A stretch of 64,000 nt of DNA from NCBI GenBank assembly GCA_964247055.1, contig OZ176051.1, positions 11,842,001 through 11,906,000 on the forward strand, written 5' to 3'. Below, one piece after another: positions 28,978-59,000 of this stretch (the stretch's first letter is position 1; each line of letters starts with the position of its first letter). The stretch comes from Paragordius varius. Taxonomy: Eukaryota > Animalia > Nematomorpha. A program made the position numbers and the translations under genes. The notes under the pieces are model-generated. The model made no database searches. It was not told the DNA's origin and was given only the letters and a program-made list of their open reading frames with translations.

Positions 28978-29793
28978 GACTAATTCCACTAAAATATATA
29001 ATCACGAAAAATTAATATTTATAATTTTTTTGTTTTCGATTAAATGAATGATGTATTTAAAACTCACCTATAAATTTTACAAGATATAATATTGATTGAT
29101 TTTATACTTATTGTAATATCTATGCGCTTATATTAAGCTTCCCAAAATTAATATGGCCATTGTTAATTGTCCTTAATTCGATCCATTCGTTTCAATTAAA
29201 AAATACATATAAAACAGTCGATAGTGTTTAACCGTTTTTTTCTGAAATATAATGGCTACCGATGCATCGTAGGGATAAAATATAACATATTTTTGGTAAG
29301 GCGCAATTTACCTCTCTCCTAAGCCTATCAACGATACCTATATATGTAGAAACAAGCCGTGGCATATTATGTGTCGCTGCTTAGACGAAACAACATCCGA
29401 TGTTTCTCATGAAAATGATTTGAAATTTATGGAATTTACATAAAATTTTACGTTATTTTTAAATGGTGGTATACCTTTGCGAAAGAATTCTATACAGAGG
29501 TTTTGAATAATAAAGCTACTTTTTTGAAGTGTCTATAATCCCTAATTTGACACGTGTTTGGGCTAAAATTAGGACCTTATTTCAAAAATTATGTCATCTT
29601 AGCGCATTAAAAATATCTTAAGAGATTAGTAGACTAAATAAAAATGTGACTTAGTAACCCTCGGCTCATTTATAAACGGATAAAATTTTTCACTTGCAGA
29701 AAATTTCTGGAAACTCATTATTATAATCTCCATTAAAAAACCGAGATCATGGTGCTTAATTATGACAATATTTAGAAAGGGACTTAATTACAC

Positions 29794-30181
29794 CAGTGGC
29801 GTACCGAGCATTTGCGGCGCCCGGGGCATAAAACTTTTATGGCGCCCCTCCCCCCTTTTTTAAAAAGCCAATAAAACAATTTAGTAAAAAAAATAGTTGT
29901 AATCTAAACACCATAGATAAGACAGCACAGTCATAAAAATTTTAAATCTATTAAATATATATTTTTATATGATACTAAATTTATTCAATGGTACTAATTA
30001 GGTGAATAATAGAGTATATATTATAGGGATTATTACCTAAATTGCTGAAAAATCTCAATTGAAAGTTCTTATTATTTTTGCATAATTAAAATTTAATTTT
30101 AAAAAATCATTTAGGCGCCCCTAAATAACGGCGCCCGGGGCATGATGCACCACCTTGCCCCCGCCCCTCGGTACGCCCCTG
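29794..30181. mobile_element. hAT-type MITE (388 bp), probably young
   Basis: TIR CAGTGGCGTACCGAG / CTCGGTACGCCCCTG; perfect 8-bp TSD AATTACAC; GGCGCCCGGGGCAT subterminal motifs. Confidence 0.88.
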
Positions 30182-31431
30182 AATTACACTCGGCGCATTT
30201 ATAATAAAAAAATTACTTTAAATGGGTTTATTAGTTTCCTATTACAACCAATATTTTTTCAATTTAACGGCGGAGTTAAACTAAAGGAATTCAAAATAAA
30301 AGTAATCGGATTAATATTTATAAAATTTAATTCTGAAAATTTAAACGCAAAAGTTTTCGAGTAAATTCCTGAAAAGTCAATAATCTCCATATTACCTATT
30401 AAAAAAAAACTCTCTTCACACAGACGATTAAAGGGTAAATTGTAAAAATATGACCTAATCATCTTCGGCGCATTTATAAATATTATTCAAAGAATGAATC
30501 AGTTATCCTTGACACATTCAATGACTAAAAATTTCACTTGAATTCTAAGCCTTTAATAATATCTTTAAAGCAAATATTTTTTAATAAATCCCATTTTTGT
30601 GTGAAGTGCAGGGGGCTATTTAAAAAAATTGATCTGTTGCCCTTTGCATTATTAAAAAATCCGTTAATAAATTCCGATAACGATTTCAGAAAAACTGTTT
30701 AAAAGCAATTAATAACCAACCCATTGATCGGGGATGGTCTGAACTAATTTAATATAAGGGCTCAGCGATTCTCAGCCAAAAATAAATTTGAGCTTAAAAA
30801 TTTGAAATCAAAAACTCCTATTTTGTTAAGGGGTATGGCAAAACCTTGGTGCTAAATACGGATCAATTACCCTAGGCGCATCAAATATTCAATATATATA
30901 TATATACTTTGGAATTTAACTGAATCACAAATTTGAATTGCGATATTAGCGCACATTATGCTTAAAAAATTTTTAAGATAAATTAATTCCAGAAATTATC
31001 AAAAATGTAGCATAGAGCCTATTTAAAAAATATGAAAATGTCCATTTTTAAAAATCTCGACATTAGTTAGTTTTCTTAAAAGGGAAAAATGTCGAGATTG
31101 CGCGATATGTAATCACTAATACTTCATTACATTTTCCTTTTTTATCCTAGTTTACCTTATTGGATATTTTTATATCCCAGAGTTAAATTTTGCAAATAAA
31201 CTAGCTGTGAAATATTTTATTTAACAAACATTGTTGTCAATTATATAAAAAACTTATATTACAGTTTTGTGATTTCTAGAGTCTAAAATTGGGACCGCTC
31301 CAAGCGATCGAAACAAACAGCTTATATTAAAATCGATTTATAAATATCAAGTTTTTGCTGGTAAAATGCAGCCTAAAAGCTTTTTAAACTTAATTTTTTA
31401 CATTTTTTAACCATAATATACATTAATTTGC

Positions 31432-31918
31432 TTGTTACACAAGCGATTTAAAGAATATAGAAAAAGGCTGCAAAAAGTTTTAGACAATTTTACATTTTTA
31501 AAAAAAAGATTAAAGAAAGCATATTTTCAAATTTGGCTCAATACTCTAGATACTTATAAGATGTTGCAATTTCAAATCGTAGGATATAACCCCAAAATAT
31601 GGAATGAGAAGGATAGACATGGCATCCAAAATTGAAAATATTCATAGAGCGTATAGAAGCATGGTCGAAACGGTAAATAATATGCATTTTCAAATTCATA
31701 TAACAAATTATATATATATCGACAATTTTAGGTTTTTAGGAAAACTAGTTCATTTTATCGAGGCAAGAATTGAGACCTTGGAAGCCCACATATATATAGA
31801 ACATTGTTTCGCTTTTAAAGGGCTGCAAAAAATATTGTCTTTCAAGGACTGTGCACCTTATCTTACCGATAAAATTTTACAGCTGACCAAAAGATTAAAA
31901 AATAATTTAGAGGCATAA
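31432..31918 (+). mobile_element. Probable decayed CR1/L2-like LINE RT C-terminal fragment
   Basis: Two overlapping frames with ..KIW..IDMASKIENIHRAYR.., resembling the VW.P..DI.KIE.IQRR motif; weak match. Confidence 0.35.
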
Positions 31919-32252
31919 AAAAGCAATATAGTGGGCCGCGGTTTGAGAACAACTTGTTAAATAAATAAATGAGCGAAGCAGTTAGCTTTCCCCATTACAA
32001 AATTGAAAATAATTTTCTTACATCGCTCATAAGCCCCAAAACCACCTTGAAAATTCTGATAGTATCTAAATGATAATTCCTTGTATTAAAACCAACTGCA
32101 ATAGGTAAAAAATAAAAAAAGTAAATATACACCGATATGGTACCCGTTAAATTAAATATAATTAAAATGCATAATAAATTTAAAAAAATGCCTCAACATT
32201 TATTAATATAATGAAACAGATGCATATGAAAACACAAGTAAAGATATTACAT

Positions 32253-32801
32253 TCAAATATAATTTAACCGATACATTATGTATAATTCAGTGAAGGCTAT
32301 TACCAAAGCACTTATCAATCCGGATAATAATTGACAAACTAAACATTTTCCATTTGAAAGATATTTATAGGCAAAAAATGCAAAAACAAATGTACCGACC
32401 ACGGAAAATATATAGTTGAAAACTAAATAAATATCGTTTGCAATGAATTTAGGATTTATATCCCGATAAATTCTAGGGTGTTCAATGTTTGCTACCATTT
32501 TCTTATACTCCATATTTTCCATTTTAGTTTTAATAGTTTGAAGATTTTCTTGATATTGCGGATCGATTAATTTATTTTGTTTCGATATGAATTGCATATC
32601 ACAAATTTTAATAAAATCTGTTAAATTAACGGTGTTGCACAAATGGCAAATGTTGTGATTGTACATTTTAACAAAATCCTTATAATAGATCCAATCATTT
32701 GCAGTGATGTTTTCGGTTTTTGAAATATGAGAGCACTTGACTAAATTAGCGAAAAATTTATTAAGTTTGGCTGGTGAAGCAGAAATATATAAGCCATCCA
32801 T
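32253..32801 (-). CDS. TMEM199: V-ATPase assembly factor TMEM199/Vma12 (intronless, 182 aa)
   Basis: DPQYQENLQTIKTKMENMEYKKMVANI matches the Vma12 core. It is followed by two hydrophobic segments (VFNYIFSVVGTFVFAF; LSGLISALVIAFTELYIMYR) with the conserved AELY-like motif. Confidence 0.85.
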   Translation of the reverse strand: MDGLYISASPAKLNKFFANLVKCSHISKTENITANDWIYYKDFVKMYNHNICHLCNTVNLTDFIKICDMQFISKQNKLIDPQYQENLQTIKTKMENMEYKKMVANIEHPRIYRDINPKFIANDIYLVFNYIFSVVGTFVFAFFAYKYLSNGKCLVCQLLSGLISALVIAFTELYIMYRLNYI

Positions 32802-33106
32802 TATACTTTCATTAATTTATCCAATAATCTCTCGACAGAATCTTTATCCTTTTCCAAACTGCTCAAAAGGGATTTAGATTTATATATTCTTGTTTCCAAT
32901 TCAGATTTTAAATCCTTTTTAGGAGTTAATAGAAAAAACTTACCCAGAGATAAATAGAGGTTAATATTACTAGTAAGAGGGGATATCTCTTGAAGTGTCA
33001 ATTCTTCTGATTGAATATTATATTTTGCAACTTCTATCGCATTCAAAATATCTTGCAATTTTTGTTGAAGGTTAAGTTTTCGTTCATAATCCTTAAAATC
33101 AGTCAT
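32801..33106 (-). CDS. PFDN1: Prefoldin beta-type subunit, PFDN1-like (intronless, 101 aa)
   Basis: Coiled coil - LTLQEISPLTSNINLYLSLGKFFLLTPK - coiled coil, aligning to the PFDN1 hairpin LTDTEIMTL..NMYEGVGRMFIL. Confidence 0.75.
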   Translation of the reverse strand: MTDFKDYERKLNLQQKLQDILNAIEVAKYNIQSEELTLQEISPLTSNINLYLSLGKFFLLTPKKDLKSELETRIYKSKSLLSSLEKDKDSVERLLDKLMKV

Positions 33107-33184
33107 TAGCTAAATATCAATTGACGCATTCATTCACTCACATTTACCGGAAAACTTTCTAAAAATACAACCTATATGAAAGAT
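33107..33184. promoter_or_regulatory. 78-bp spacer between divergent start codons (putative bidirectional promoter)
   Basis: PFDN1 ATG at 33106 (-) and eIF4A ATG at 33185 (+); contains a CCGGAA(A) ETS-like motif. Confidence 0.55.
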
Positions 33185-36100
33185 ATGTCCAAGTAATGTG
33201 TTTATCAAATATATTTTAGTAATGATGTAAACAATGTAGAAAATAATAACATTGTCCATCTAAATGATGGAACTCTAGAGGTACAATAATTTTGTTTTAA
33301 TAATTTAGACAAATTGGAAAGAAGTTATTGATTCATTTGATGATATGAATCTGAAAGATAATCTTTTGCACGGAATATACAATTATGGTTTTGAAAAACC
33401 TTCAGCTATCCAGCAAAGAGGTATTAAGCCCATAATTGAGGGTCATGATGTTATTGCTCAAGCCCATTCCGGAACCGGAAAAACGGCAACTTTTGCCATA
33501 GCGATTCTCCAAAAAATTGACATTAATTTAAGGCAATGTCAAGCCTTAATTCTTGTTCCAACTCGGGAACTTGCTTTACAAGTAATTTTTATAATCGTTT
33601 ATTAAATAAAAGCTGCTTGTGTTCCGAACGGTAATGTTACATTTTTAAAAGGGTTTTTTTTATAAAAAGTAAATTGGTTTATGAAAAAAATTTATGGCAA
33701 ATTAGTTTTGAATTGTTTTTTTTGGTCATATTGTTTTAATTGTTCTATTTAATTTATAATATGTTTGCAATTTTCTAAAAAATATATTTGACATAAAAAA
33801 CTTAAATAAAATGGAAACTATTTCGTGTTCTCCTTTTTTTTTGTAAAAAAAGACTCTAAGCAACGATTGTAATTAATTTTATAAACTTTTTCTAAGACTG
33901 CAAATAAAAATTCTGTGTTACAGATTCAAAAAGTAGTTTTGGCCATTGGTGATTACATGGGTATTGCTTGTCATGCCTGTATCGGGGGAACCAATGTTTC
34001 CGCTGATATAGCACGTTTGGAAGAAACTCAAATTGTGGTTGGAACGCCAGGCCGCGTTCATGATATGATACAAAGAAATGCGCTAAGTAAGGCATTTTTA
34101 TGATTGTAATGGTACATGACGGATTGATTATGTTTTGTAATAACTTGTTAAATCCATTAAATAATTATAAACGAAAATTAAATAGAAAATTAATTGACAG
34201 ATATTTATTAATATAATTAAATGAAAGGGTTTTACATATCGTTTATAATTTCTATTATTAAACATCTCCCAAATAATTTTCGTTTATCATTAATTAACGG
34301 ATTTTACAAGTTATTATTTTATATGACTATTTTTTCTATGTTTTCTAATGTAATTAATACTATAAAGTTTTGATCTATGCTTAAATTTACATATCTTTCT
34401 GTCATTATCCGTATATTAGGATTAGATAATATCCAAATGTTTGTGTTGGACGAATCGGATGAAATGTTATCCCGTGGCTTTTTGGATAACATTCAAAATA
34501 TATTTCGATGTCTGAAACATCCTACCCAAGTATATCTATACATTGTTGTATAATATTTACACTTCAAATTCACCCTCAAAACTATTTAATTACCTATAGA
34601 ACCTAATTTTCGTTTTTTATTAATATAATACTGAAAGAAGAATGAATTATGCCACAAAGAAATAATTATTATCAATGATAAGTTTAATTAGCACCAAAAA
34701 GATTATTTATTGTTAGGGTGAATTCGAATTGTTCAAGGGTGAATTTGAGTGTTTATATATCACACATTTATTTTTAATATATGTATATTATAGACTGTTT
34801 TACTTTCTGCCACGATGCCGGCCGAAATTTTGCAAATCACTCAAGAGTTTATGCGAAACCCGATTAAAATTTTGTTGAAGAAAGAAGAACTTACCCTCGA
34901 GGGTATCAAACAATTTTTCGTGATGCTCGAAATGGAGGTATTTTATATTATGTATATGATATAAAAAAACATATTTAGCGTTAATTTATAAAACTTTATG
35001 AATAAAGGAAAAATTAACAGTTTTTAATCTTCTAAATCATTGTTGTGAAAAATACAATTGTAGTATCAAATAATGATTAAATTACGGTTTTAAATAATAA
35101 TTATTAATTACTTTTTAATATTTTTTGATTAAGTTAGGTCATCTATTCCTTTTTTATAAATATGTTAAACCGTGTTGTAAATAATCCGATTTTCAACTTA
35201 ATTTTTGAATTAAGAAGAACAATAGTGTTTTGAAAATAAATTTCTGCTATATTTGTAGTAATCACAATTTTTCCTCGGTATTTTGAGGTGTCCACCCGAA
35301 TACTTTTGCTGGCGGCATTTTTCGCTCCAAAATTCAGGCGGGCCGCATTTAAAAAACATATTTTATTAGATTTTAAAAATAAAACTGTAAAAAAATTGCA
35401 GTAAAACTACAATTTATATTAACAATTTTTGCTACTTTATTGCCAAAATATGCAAAAAAGTACTCAGAGAATCTGTTTGAGAAATATCAATTTTACATTG
35501 ATTTTACAAAATGTTTTTTTTTGATTATAAAATTCTTTTGGTATTTTACGAGTAACATGTTGGACCCGAATATAACTACTTGTATAGTTAACAAATAAAT
35601 TGAATTTTATATACAAACTCTGTTTTTATTAAATTTCAGAGGTGGAAATTCGAAACTTTGTTGGATTTGTACGAAACCATTGCCATTGCAAAAGTTGTAA
35701 TATTTTGCAACACTAAACGCAAAGTTGAATGGCTTACTGCAAGTCTGATTGAAAAATCATTTTCCGTATCTGCAATGGTATTATTTTAATTATTTCCCCA
35801 GATAATATTATTTAAATTTTACAAAACATTGAGAATTACTTTCAAATATAAGGTAGTGAGAATATAGAATGTTATTATGTAAAATTCAATATTTGTTTAG
35901 TTCATCATTTTGGATGACTTAGTAAAAATTGAATTTATAAAGACGAAACTTAAAAACTAAAACATAAATTCAAAAAGTATCCTTTATTAGACCTAGATTT
36001 GTCAAAAAAAAATTTGTGTTAAATGGGTATAAATATTTGGTAAAGAATTGAAAATACAAGAGTTCTTTGGTAATTCTTATACCTTTTTGATGAATTACAC

Positions 36101-49740: not shown

Positions 49741-52700
49741 TTTAAAATCGCTCTGACAAAACTATCCCAGAAATAAATAAAGTGTCAACATTTGGGCACT
49801 TAAATATTAATTCTGGGTGCACTTGATGGTGTTTGCTTGCCTTAGCCCTTCGAAAATGTAATCCTTGCTTCCAAAAAATTTCGGGATTTTTACTTTGTAT
49901 ATTTTTCAAGTAATTTTAAATTATTTTTAAAAACGATATGGTTTACCAGCAATAATAGATTTATTACAAGTAAAATAGGTTGTATTCTTGTTATAAAAAA
50001 TATTTTGCAAAATAATAAGTTAATCCAGTCGCATAAAATTTTGCAATTAAAATGCCAATCATGTCGTAAAAACTCAAATATTATACCAAATAACTTTGAG
50101 ACTCAACTCGAAAAAGTTAATAGATAATATAATTTCTCAAAATAAAAACTGACACATGTCTGTTTTAACACTCTACCTGGAGTGCATTATAAGAAATATC
50201 CCACAAACTTACGGCATCAACGTAGTTGGGAACCTACTTACATCCGTTCACTACGCGGATGATACAGTCTTATTCGCAGACAGTCTAGACACATTATCGC
50301 AAGCCTTGCAAGTGTTTGCAACTGAATGCAATAAATTTGGATTAAATATCAATTTCAAAAAAACAAAAGGCATGCAAATAAATCCAGCTCAAACCAATCC
50401 AATAATCCTCAACGGCAACCAGATCGAAACAGTTAGCAGCTACACGTACTTAGGTAGCATTATTAATAATGAGAACAACTCTACGCCTGAAATAAAGCGA
50501 AGAATTGCTATTGCTAAAGCAGTAACTTTTAAATATAACAGGATTTGGATGTCACATGACATTAAACTACAAACCAAAATCAGATTAATCAAAGCTACAG
50601 TTTTCCCCACATTCATGTATGGGGGGAAAGCTGGACACTGAAAAAATATGATGAACGTCTAATAAATTCTTTCGAATTATGGGTTTGGAGGAAACTTCTT
50701 CAAACAAAATGGACAGACAAAGTTTCAAACACCACCATTCTAAATAAAATAAACCCAGAAATGTCATTTCTTGGCAGCTTAACACGGCAAAAACTCTCCT
50801 TCTTCGGGCACATCATGAGATCCAGTTCACTTGAAAAATCACTGATGCTGGGGAAAGTGAGTGGTGCCCGAAAAAGAGGGAGAAGACGAACTCGTTGGAT
50901 GGATAACATCCTCAAAGAAACTAACCAATCATTATCCGACCTAAACACCAAAACCGGAAATCGCAACGAATGGAGAAGTTTTATTTTCAATGTTGCAATC
51001 AGTCGGAATCGACTTTAGCAAACAACAACAACAACTTTTTTAGTTTATTTTCTACTCTGGAACTATTTTAGATATCTCATTAATATTTTTACCTTAAATT
51101 TTAATTTTTAGTTTTTATTTTAATTTTATTTTTTCGTTTGACAAGGATTACTAGTGGTAATCGAAAATTCACCCCAATAAATTCATATAATTTTAGCTGA
51201 ATTATAATTGCCATATTCATATACTTCAATCTTTCTGTGATATTGTGCCAATTAATATAGAGGTATTCCATGGCTTTTTAGGGGCTTTATTCATTTCATT
51301 TTTTTAAAAAAATAATATGTTAAAAATTTTTCAAACTTTTTGCCATTAAAAAAATTTCTAAATTTTGTTGAAACGCTAAAAATATAATATATAAAAAACT
51401 TAGTTTGTAATGTCAATGTTTTTGAATATATTTCAAGGTAATTTTTTGCTAATGTATTGTATTTATGAAATATTTAAATTTAAGGCCCTTGAGATAATAC
51501 ATCCCAAAATTTATTCTTCTTATATAAAATTTAATAAGTAATTTGAAAAAAAAATTCCTACATAAATACAACCGCCTCACCCTGATTATTGGATAGATAA
51601 AATTTTAGTTTGAGCGTGTTTTTGATGACTATAAATTCTGCTATAACTAAATAATTCAATGCAATTGAGAAGCTATTTTGTATCGCTATTTCTATTTAGA
51701 GTATATACAATATTTTTTAATAAAGAGTAGGTTATTAAAAGTTAGAAAATCTTATGTCTACAACTTTAACAATAATTATTAGTATTTATGAGATTCAGCT
51801 TGCTTAGAAGAACGCCTTTTATTTGTAAAAATTTTATTTCGTTTATAAGGTACATCTCTTAATAGATGTCTTATCTTGTTTTTATTACCCCACCAAGTTT
51901 TAGCTATTGTGGCCTTTATTTGTATTGTTAAATAAAGCAATTTTAATCTATATATATATATATATATATATATTAGAATTCTCTGGTCATCAATAAAGTT
52001 AATAATACTGACACAATTATCAATCCATCAATTTTCGATGACATGGATTTTTATTACCGACTTGTGAAAGATTTTGTGGACAAAAATAATTCATTACAAA
52101 CTTCTCACAAAAATAATCAAAGGTTTGGCAGTTTTGATATTAAAATTTACAGTTTTTTATAGTTCATTTTGCAGCATAATTGGTATAAACAATTTTTATT
52201 AGTTAAGATTGTCATTAATATTTTGATCATGCAACATGTTTTTTATAGGTGTATTATTTTTACATATTGTAATAAAAACATTAAATTTTGTATTATATCC
52301 ATTTAAAATTATTCATCCAAATAATATTTAGTTAACATAACTAAAGAAGTTGACTTTTCCCTATCTATTCTGAAAGACAAAATCTAATTTTAATATAAAT
52401 AATTGTTATATCTGTGAAAAAATGAGAAAAGAAATTCATAGTTTTAAATAAAAAATATAACAACTAATTTGTTAAACGCTTTGTCAATAGTAATCGCAAT
52501 GCTATTTCTCTGTTTATAAAGTAATTTTCAGGTGTATTTTCGTTTATCATTATTTCACGGTCCGTCATTTACCATTTATAATTCTAATATTTTTTTACAC
52601 ATTCCTTAGTTATTTTGTTTGTAATTTAAGGTATTGATTTTTTTACGACTTGGTACTTTCAGGTAATTTTTACATTTTATCAGTTGTAACATTGTGATCA

Positions 52701-56015: not shown

Positions 56016-59000
56016 AGTACCAACTAATTAGCTAACTTTTAAAGTGAAAGGTCAAATCTATTGATAAAGCAGGCTCTATGCTTCCAGAAAAAGGGAGCCA
56101 TTACAAATTTTACAAATATATTTTGTTGGTGATGATACCGTTGAACTTGGTATCCGTTGCAATAATTTTATTATTAAGAGGCCAATTTTATTAGAGATAC
56201 AGGAACTATTACATCAGCATAATCAGTTGGGAAAATTGTTTAAAACAGAAATAGATATGATTCCGTCTAATACGCATAAAATTATTATGCCGACAAAGTG
56301 CCTCATGGCGAATATGAAAGCAGATTTAATGCTCCCACAATGAATGAGGTAGCTATTGTTATGGACGGCGATCAATTTTATTCAAGAGATATTGTTCTTC
56401 ACCTGAGAAATTTATTATTGTAGCAAAGATCGTTGTCGATATATTGCTTTTTCGAAGGTGTATTTTCTCCAGTTTATTCGATTGTGAGTGAGTGATGTTA
56501 ACTGTTGTAAAGAGAGATTGGTTTCTTTGGTTAGGTTTTCAATCCAGCGCATCTTGCAGCGTCCACGTTTCCTGGATCCTTCGACCTTGCCTGTTATTAG
56601 TTGGAATTCCAAGTCATTAGCTCTGGTAATGTGACCAAAGTATGATAATTTCATTTTGAGGCACATGCCAATCAAGTGTATCTCGGGGTTTATTTTTTTA
56701 AGGATTACAGTGTTTTTTACTTTATCTTTCCAAGTGATTTGAAGTGCCTTCCGCCAGCACCAGATTTTGAAGGCGTTAATGTATTTTTCGTCTGTCTTTT
56801 TTATTGTCCAGCTTTCTGATGCATATAGCATGCTAGGAAATATTAGGGCTTTAACTAAACGGATTTTTGTTTTAAGTTTGATGTCGTGTGATGACCATAG
56901 TATATTATATTTTATCATTTTTGTCTTAGCAATCCCTATTCTTCTTTTAATGTCTGGGGTGCTGTTGTTCGTTGTATTTATAAGACTGCCTAGGTAAGTG
57001 TATTGGGACACTACTTCTATTTGTTGGTTGTGAAAAGATAAGTTGTTATAGTGGTTATGAGCATTTATTATCATGATTTTAGTTTTTTTAAAGTTGATCG
57101 TCAATCCAAATTTTTGACATTCGTTTGAGAATTCAGTTAGGAGTTTTTTCAGGTTGTCCACTGAGTTTGACAGCAGTGTCATCAGCATAATGGAGTGATG
57201 ATATAATATTGCCGGCAATGCTTATACCATTAGTTTTATCTATATCCCGTAATACACTTTCTATGCAGACGTTAAAGAGAGTGGGTGAGAGGACACAACC
57301 TTGTCTTAGACCGTTGTTCATTTGTACCCAATTACTTATGCCATGTGGGGTTTTTATGTTTAGTGATAAGTTGGAATAAAGGGATTTTATGATGTTCAAA
57401 ATGTGATCTGAGACACCCATCTGAGATAGTGCCTTCCACAGCGTGTCGTGTTTCACGCTGTCGAAGGCTTTTGTAAAATCAATGAAGCAGATGTGGGTTT
57501 CTTTCTGAAATTCAATTTGTTTTTCGAATATCCAACGTATATTGCTGATCATGTCCCTGCATCCGCGATTGGATCTGAATTTCGCTTGAGTATTAGAAAG
57601 TTCGGCTTCAATTATGCCTTGGATACGCCTGTGAATTATTTTGAGGAAAACTTTTGATGCTTTTTGAAAAATGTGTCTGAGACTCATAGATGTTACGATC
57701 CATTACAATATCCATTAATATTCTGGGATGGCACAGATGGATATAATTTTAATGTTAAGATGATTAATCCTATCACCAAACAAGAAACTAATAAAAAATA
57801 TAGCGCAATGTAATATTATTCGTCTCAATTAAAGTATAAGGAACGGTCAGGATAATCATATTTTAAGATGCCGACAATTATTCCCAATACATTGTAGATA
57901 TGTATGCAAAAATAGAAACAGAGCGTATGTTATCTTCGGTTAAGGCTAAACTTTGTTCTGAAGAATATATACAACTATGAGATGCTTTAGTTAATGATTG
58001 TAATATTAACAATATTGGGAGATTGACAATACTACCATCCACTTACATAGGTAGTCCTCGCCTTATGCATAAATATGCCCAAAATGTTTCGCGTATGTGG
58101 CACAATGTGGACGCCCAGATATATTTGTTAAATTTGCATGTAATCCTCTTTGGGAATCTATAAAAGTTTTCCTATTCCCTGGACAGGAGCCATAAGAACG
58201 ACATCACAGCTCAAGTTTAAAGGGGTAGCTTAGATCTTTGATTGATTTTATAGTTAAATTAGAGGTGTTTGGTGCAGTGCAATGTTGAATGTATTCAGTC
58301 GAGTGGCAAAAAAGGGGACTATCATATGCACATATATTGATTTGGCTTTATTCCAAAATAAGGTCAAGTGAAATATATCCGCTGAAATAGCTGATCATAC
58401 GATTAAAGATTTAAATCAGGCTGTTATATCCTATATATGAACGTAGCCCTACAGTTGTTCATTTAGCAATACATTTAGAAAATGGGTAACTTGTCTATTT
58501 TACAGCTTCTAATGCCATAGAGGTGGCTAGATATCCACCAGATACTACTTTAACCGCTTTCTTAAAGTTATGGCAAAAGGCCTTTGTGAAAACATTCTCT
58601 ATTCCGAAATACTTTCCTATTACATATGGAACGCTAAAAAAGAATTCGAACGGCCCAAGCGAGGGATTCCAGTTAGTTGCTATTCTGGTATATATATATA
58701 AAGGTGCGGCATTAGGTAGATTATACACGGTTCATCCAAACCAAGACGAATGTTTTTTTCTTCGTCTGTTATTGATAAATGTGAGAGGACCATCATCATT
58801 TGATTATTTAAAAACCGTAAACGGTGTTTTACATCCTACGTTTCGCAATTCATGCCAGGTGCTTAATTCGGAAAATGATCAACATTGGGATCTAGGTATC
58901 CATGATGCTTTAGTAATGCTAAAATATTAATAACAATGAGGTAACAATTTTCACTGGCGCTTTGATAAAAATCGAGGTCATTTGTCTAGAGATATCAAAC

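Follow-up and report, generated by a model that had tools for sequence, protein, structure and literature searches.

A one-base overlap between the prefoldin subunit 1 and TMEM199/Vma12 genes of the horsehair worm Paragordius varius, a predicted dicistronic pair

The window analysed here is the whole 64-kb stretch of Paragordius varius DNA, with a GC content of 27%, similar to that of the Gordionus genome. On its minus strand lie a gene for a PFDN1-like prefoldin subunit 1 and, directly behind it, a gene for the V-ATPase assembly factor Vma12/TMEM199, and the two constitute a real, conserved and overlapping gene pair. The features of the locus are as follows, in window coordinates.

32801..33106, minus strand: PFDN1-like prefoldin subunit 1 coding sequence, 101 amino acids, no intron in the coding sequence (open reading frame, Pfam, PDB and Gordionus match)
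32253..32801, minus strand: Vma12/TMEM199 V-ATPase assembly factor coding sequence, 182 amino acids, no intron in the coding sequence (open reading frame, Pfam and Gordionus orthologues)
32799..32803, minus strand: TAATG overlap, made up of the prefoldin stop TAA (32803-32801) and the TMEM199 ATG (32801-32799) with base 32801 in common
32199..32204, minus strand: AATAAA, likely to serve both genes as poly(A) signal; the TMEM199 stop lies 48 nt before it, and it belongs to the last stretch that can be aligned between haplotypes
32757..32762, minus strand: AATAAA within the TMEM199 coding sequence (codons 14-15), the sole nearby candidate for a prefoldin-only poly(A) signal; polymorphic
33110..33141, minus strand: candidate 32-nt micro-intron in the prefoldin 5' UTR (GTGAGT...TTTAG), predicted, ending 3 nt before the ATG
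33107..33175: the 69 nt that separate the divergent ATGs of prefoldin (minus strand) and the eIF4A-family gene (plus strand), presumed promoter region, common or overlapping
33176..33605, plus strand: coding exons 1 to 3 of an eIF4A-family gene (DEAD-box helicase); the two introns between them lie at 33193-33219 (27 nt) and 33281-33308 (28 nt)

The names PFDN1 and TMEM199, proposed for the two open reading frames (ORFs) in the first-pass annotation, hold, because both ORFs exceed the Pfam gathering scores (27.6 bits for Prefoldin_2 and 25.5 bits for Vma12) and because human prefoldin subunit 1 is the nearest structure. The prefoldin ORF matches Prefoldin_2 with 45.9 bits (5.9e-12) over profile positions 6-95 of 106, and the TMEM199 ORF matches Vma12 with 45.1 bits (1.3e-11) over residues 80-178, the C-terminal hydrophobic region included. 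Human prefoldin subunit 1 was the top match of the prefoldin ORF among solved structures in the PDB, at an E-value of 0.004, although the margin is modest. At E <=1 the solved structures matched were human subunit 1 and archaeal beta subunits only, and human subunits 2, 4 and 6, which belong to the same complex, were absent from these matches. The worm prefoldin ends about 11 residues short of human PFDN1 at its C-terminus.

The claim of a one-base overlap between two intronless same-strand ORFs was borne out (minus-strand ORFs 33106..32801 and 32801..32253). The distance from stop to start is -1 nt, which leaves no space between the cistrons in which a 3' UTR, promoter or 5' UTR could fit. 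It is the only pair of same-strand ORFs of at least 60 amino acids lying -4 to +10 nt apart in the 64 kb; 0.015 such pairs per window are expected from shuffled windows. An assembly error at the junction, a doubt that the first-pass annotation had itself raised, was ruled out by independent contigs from another sample that cross it without indels, and the junction is therefore not an assembly artefact. Five public runs contain the stretch; all are DNA-like, with contigs that span intergenic DNA and repeats. One contig (X1 record 7, 32667-32822) spans the junction and is identical to the window, and two contigs from a second sample, X4 record 22 (32688-32940) and X5 record 30 (32199-33400), span it without gaps. 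No substitution in the TAATG letters was found among the differences listed, and there was no indel at the junction.

Both genes are under purifying selection, as the listed variants demonstrate. In the prefoldin ORF all six of the six variants listed are synonymous; in the Vma12 ORF seven of those listed are synonymous and six non-synonymous, with all of those in the part encoding the C-terminal membrane region synonymous. Inside the genes there are 16 differences in 465 nt (about 3%). Strong haplotype divergence was seen beyond the genes, at 31895-32199. Here 32044-32199 (about 154 nt) is replaced by 169 other letters in the X4 and X5 contigs (sample S3), and at 31895-32044 the haplotypes differ by 20 letters and 11 gaps. 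As the haplotypes stop aligning just past the AATAAA at 32204-32199, the conserved block extends from the 5' region as far as the poly(A) signal that follows TMEM199. The AATAAA within TMEM199 is itself affected by a variant at 32759 (K15E); contigs of X1, X4 and X5 read AATGAA here, and this polymorphism argues against it being an essential signal.

On the other side of the pair, the ATG of the eIF4A-family gene (33176, plus strand) is only 69 nt from the prefoldin ATG, and the description of the other genes in the window as lying kilobases apart has to be corrected accordingly. The spliced translation of this gene reads through into the conserved helicase N-terminus, and its matches in the PDB are eIF4A-I/II/III (E about 1e-31). 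The candidate micro-intron in the prefoldin 5' UTR resembles the 27- and 28-nt introns of the eIF4A gene in size and ends and, if spliced, would take out three upstream ATGs. A palindrome, TTAGCTAA, lies at 33103-33110 beside the prefoldin ATG and presents a TAG/AG acceptor-like site on both strands. The prefoldin ATG stands in a weak start context (cuaAUGa) and the TMEM199 ATG in a strong one (auaAUGg, with A at -3 and G at +4). Within the prefoldin ORF there are three internal ATGs, which open ORFs of 14, 2 and 3 codons, the last of these stopping at the same TAA as prefoldin. The remainder of the window is gene-poor and transposon-rich in comparison with the tight eIF4A-PFDN1-TMEM199 cluster. 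Remnants of RVT_1 reverse transcriptase are present at 50156-50641 and 56415-57687. Downstream of TMEM199, the segments 29762-30285 and 31072-31595 are very high-copy repeats, with a summed contig depth of 100 to 1000x that of their flanks; this high depth was seen in four DNA runs, with many internal joints, and the repeats are probably transposon fragments.

A search of 5.8 billion protein clusters returned close relatives of the pair only from the nematomorph Gordionus sp. m RMFG-2023. The Gordionus prefoldin is 69% identical to that of the window and has the same ...LMKV end; the Vma12 orthologues are 40-46% identical, with the C-terminal 70 residues highly conserved. The genes occur there as a PFDN1-Vma12 pair at two loci of chromosome OX940783.2, L001 at 68.18 Mb and L002 at 0.68 Mb. 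Each copy has prefoldin first and Vma12 second on the same strand, with a T-rich spacer in between that measures 132-135 nt. The operon-like linkage put forward in the first-pass annotation, which had also named synteny in related species as a check, is thus supported by the presence of PFDN1 ahead of Vma12 at both Gordionus loci. These loci are 67 Mb apart and have different neighbours; since order and strand are nevertheless the same at both, the pair moves and duplicates as a unit. The L001 copy sits within another gene on the opposite strand and has only the pair in common with the window. No eIF4A gene was found near this copy, and synteny that includes eIF4A was rejected. At L002 a transposase gene has been called upstream of the pair. 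The first methionine of the window TMEM199 aligns with the first methionine after the Gordionus spacer, so that the ATG in the overlap is the real start and what the window species lacks is exactly the spacer.

The existing annotation of the Gordionus loci, derived from BRAKER/AUGUSTUS/TSEBRA gene models, deserves some comment. For each locus ENA holds consecutive accessions for a fusion protein (288 or 391 amino acids), Vma12 alone and prefoldin alone, and RefSeq holds the Vma12 protein only, without a separate prefoldin. The two fusion models splice at different, non-homologous sites, and we therefore read them as the predictor's bridging introns and not as biology. Where transcript evidence spans both ORFs of a locus, fusion models and the lack of a prefoldin in RefSeq are a typical outcome, and in this indirect way they are consistent with a common transcript. 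The 391-amino-acid model at L002 (6759-10345) is almost certainly a chimera created by annotation, in which the prefoldin and Vma12 ORFs have been joined to exons of a DDE_Tnp_4 transposase that lies upstream. At L001 (6900-6950) the RefSeq and ENA models of Vma12 excise a 48-nt GT..AG interval in the conserved membrane region, and the 16 amino acids so cut are retained by the window and by copy 2; the excision reflects either an error of intron prediction or an isoform of a paralogue that is decaying. Annotation pipelines thus fuse such pairs or lose one member, and as a result apparent gene loss is inflated in Nematomorpha.

We tentatively favour the explanation that the pair is one transcription unit giving rise to a dicistronic mRNA, from which TMEM199 would be translated by reinitiation or leaky scanning. 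This is favoured because the pair is inherited as a unit, because there is zero room for independent signals in a genome that is not compact, and because there is precedent in flies. Transcription would start in the short divergent promoter region common with the eIF4A-family gene and end at the AATAAA 48 nt behind TMEM199, and the mature mRNA would carry both ORFs. Prefoldin, an abundant chaperone subunit, would be translated from the cap-proximal AUG in its weak context, and a minority of ribosomes would produce TMEM199, an ER assembly factor of low abundance, by starting at the overlapping AUG in its strong context. Such ribosomes may reach it by reinitiation after termination at UAAUG, or by leaky scanning past the prefoldin start. 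We infer each part of this proposal from genomic sequence: that the two genes are co-transcribed, that one mature mRNA results, and how its two ORFs are translated.

With regard to the mode of translation, the prefoldin ORF of the window contains three internal AUGs against 4.0 expected; this depletion is not significant, and leaky scanning is therefore not clearly favoured. The Gordionus ORF and spacer together contain one AUG against 4.1 expected, which is marginal (P 0.057). Reinitiation after an ORF of 101 codons is inefficient in known eukaryotic systems that have no special element (PMC10275272). No unusual RNA structure was detected at the junction (fold z -0.05) and no UGGGA (TURBS-type) motif was found in the 149 nt upstream, a motif for which the worm's own 18S complement may differ. 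Look-ups with the exact window prefoldin and TMEM199 proteins found no assembled contig on record.

One alternative is that the two genes produce overlapping monocistronic transcripts, with the TMEM199 start site at an internal promoter inside the prefoldin coding sequence; the prefoldin mRNA would then end inside TMEM199, or would run on to the common poly(A) site but leave its TMEM199 ORF silent. Monocistronic transcripts are the eukaryotic default for adjacent genes, and many FlyBase dicistronic loci also have monocistronic forms that start from downstream promoters. The prefoldin coding sequence contains a TATA-like octamer, TATATAAA, at 32879-32886, which places it 78-85 nt ahead of the TMEM199 ATG. 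However, by our own estimate such an octamer is expected about 0.5 times per 306 nt at 27% GC, and it is not conserved in Gordionus; the internal AATAAA, at which a separate prefoldin mRNA could end, is the polymorphic one described above. The genome is also not compact, with kilobases of repeats on the side of the pair away from the eIF4A gene, so that compaction does not account for the zero spacer, and the pair stays linked through its duplication in Gordionus. We consider this explanation rather doubtful.

Another possibility, and on balance an unlikely one, is that a polycistronic precursor is resolved by RNA processing, either by spliced leader (SL) trans-splicing or by alternative cis-splicing. 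The cis-splicing route would join the donor in the 5' UTR (33141) to an AG close before the TMEM199 ATG, with the prefoldin ORF skipped, and each precursor molecule would give one of the two mRNAs only. An AG at 32807-32806 precedes the TMEM199 ATG by 4 nt, and some 60 nt upstream there is a better acceptor (..ttttgagcag); for prefoldin there is a TTTAG 3 nt before the ATG, with a consensus GTGAGT donor 32 nt further upstream. The Gordionus spacer, T-rich over its 132-135 nt and carrying an acceptor-like AG in both copies, resembles a nematode intercistronic region, and it counts against the dicistronic reading in that it fits RNA processing equally. On the other hand, the AAAG acceptor at the junction lacks a pyrimidine tract, unlike the TTTAG acceptors in the window. 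An Rfam scan of the 64-kb window gave no SL RNA or other RNA matches, and no paper linking a spliced leader with Nematomorpha was found in the literature searched.

The first-pass annotation had also offered the reading that AAA|GTATAA is a splice donor, with TMEM199 nested in a prefoldin intron, or with a short intron that alters the prefoldin C-terminus or fuses the two proteins. A GT does follow Lys100 in both species (GTATAA here and GTGTGA in Gordionus), the prefoldin is short at its C-terminus relative to human PFDN1, and predicted fusions are found among the Gordionus gene models. The 36-nt GT..CAG interval at 32806-32771 would suit the micro-intron size class. Yet the Pfam domain is nearly complete without an additional exon, prefoldin ends K-V-stop in both species, and comparison of the window with both Gordionus loci by tblastn or blastn revealed no conserved downstream prefoldin exon. 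The region 32044-32199 is replaced in another haplotype, and the fusion models use non-homologous sites, as ab initio bridging introns do. A donor at this position is thus unsupported and highly improbable. As a specific candidate, the 36-nt micro-intron at 32806-32771 was rejected: its CAG is CAA in other haplotypes (32771) and splicing would be out of frame with TMEM199. A frameshift or readthrough fusion is excluded, since the TMEM199 frame has a stop 6 codons before the ATG and a slippery heptamer is absent.

If a single mRNA from this locus is confirmed, the dicistronic reading would provide a clean natural cellular UAAUG junction between two essential conserved proteins. Cellular counterparts of the viral reinitiation elements are considered an open question in a recent review (PMC10275272). 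No comparable gene pairs, operons or trans-splicing in Nematomorpha have been published in the literature searched. Perhaps the pair reflects a genome-wide habit of horsehair worms, in which dozens of zero-spacer, two-gene housekeeping units with the small protein upstream would be expressed by cellular termination-reinitiation or by an undescribed spliced leader, an extrapolation that we regard as speculative and somewhat improbable. If Nematomorpha do use polycistronic expression widely, this would have implications for the manner and timing of operon origins in the nematode-nematomorph lineage.

Nematomorpha is the sister phylum of Nematoda, and in C. elegans the SL1-type operons have zero intercistronic spacer. 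The same is reported for Ciona operons (PMC2760879). The PFDN1-TMEM199 pair resembles the SL operons of nematodes and tunicates in that unrelated housekeeping genes lie on the same strand and are inherited together, and the Gordionus spacer, at about 130 nt, T-rich and with an AG, adds a likeness to nematode operons in particular. It differs in that neither a spliced leader nor an SL RNA gene was found by the searches described above. Furthermore, since the stop overlaps the start, one precursor molecule cannot yield both mRNAs, unlike in the usual SL operons.

The polycistronic nuclear genes of green algae offer another parallel: there too a small upstream ORF with a weak start is followed by a downstream ORF with a better one, and in the algae both are on one mRNA. 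Leaky scanning is reported as their mechanism (PMC7896298, PMC11291117). In contrast to the algal upstream ORFs, which are without internal AUGs, the worm prefoldin keeps its three.

The same pentanucleotide is found in the UAAUG/AUGA reinitiation systems of viruses and a retrotransposon (influenza B M1/BM2, caliciviruses, hypovirus CHV1 and SART1), in which a long upstream ORF is joined to an out-of-frame downstream ORF (PMC10275272, PMC2699510). These systems need an upstream structured element, a UGGGA-type match to 18S rRNA (TURBS) or some other defined structure. The worm junction has its stop and start within about 20 nt, as they do, but the motif and the fold are absent, and the worm pair consists of cellular housekeeping genes. 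The 132-135-nt spacer in Gordionus means that tight coupling is not conserved.

A direct precedent comes from Drosophila, for which FlyBase lists 159 dicistronic pairs. The arrangement of PFDN1 and TMEM199 is therefore less exceptional for a eukaryote than the first-pass annotation had implied, all the more so as one of the fly pairs contains the TMEM199 orthologue. At the Drosophila loci that give polycistronic transcripts only, the stop-to-start distance ranges from -34 to 319 nt, and overlaps of 4 nt and spacers of 0 nt both occur; the -1 nt distance of the worm pair falls inside this range. The worm locus also holds two complete, conserved ORFs of different functions on the same strand, one of the features of an animal dicistronic pair in the FlyBase sense. 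In the fly Muted-CG7071 pair, CG7071 is the downstream cistron, with 5 nt from stop to start (PMC4528330 file S1), and CG7071 is the fly orthologue of TMEM199 (PMC10452791). Both pairs come from ecdysozoans and combine same-strand genes for conserved but unrelated proteins; in both the upstream cistron is small, the spacer is almost nil and the downstream cistron is a member of the TMEM199/Vma12 family. They differ at the junction, which in the worm is a 1-nt TAATG overlap, and in the kind of evidence, which is cDNA and RNA-seq for the fly transcripts and DNA contigs for the worm pair. They differ also in the upstream partner, Muted/BLOC1S5 in the fly and PFDN1 in Paragordius varius, and this difference indicates that the two arrangements arose independently. 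The TMEM199 family may thus have taken the place of second cistron in two ecdysozoan lineages independently, the worm case being a predicted dicistron, and we propose that the PFDN1-TMEM199 pair most likely belongs to the class of dicistronic genes already known from animals.
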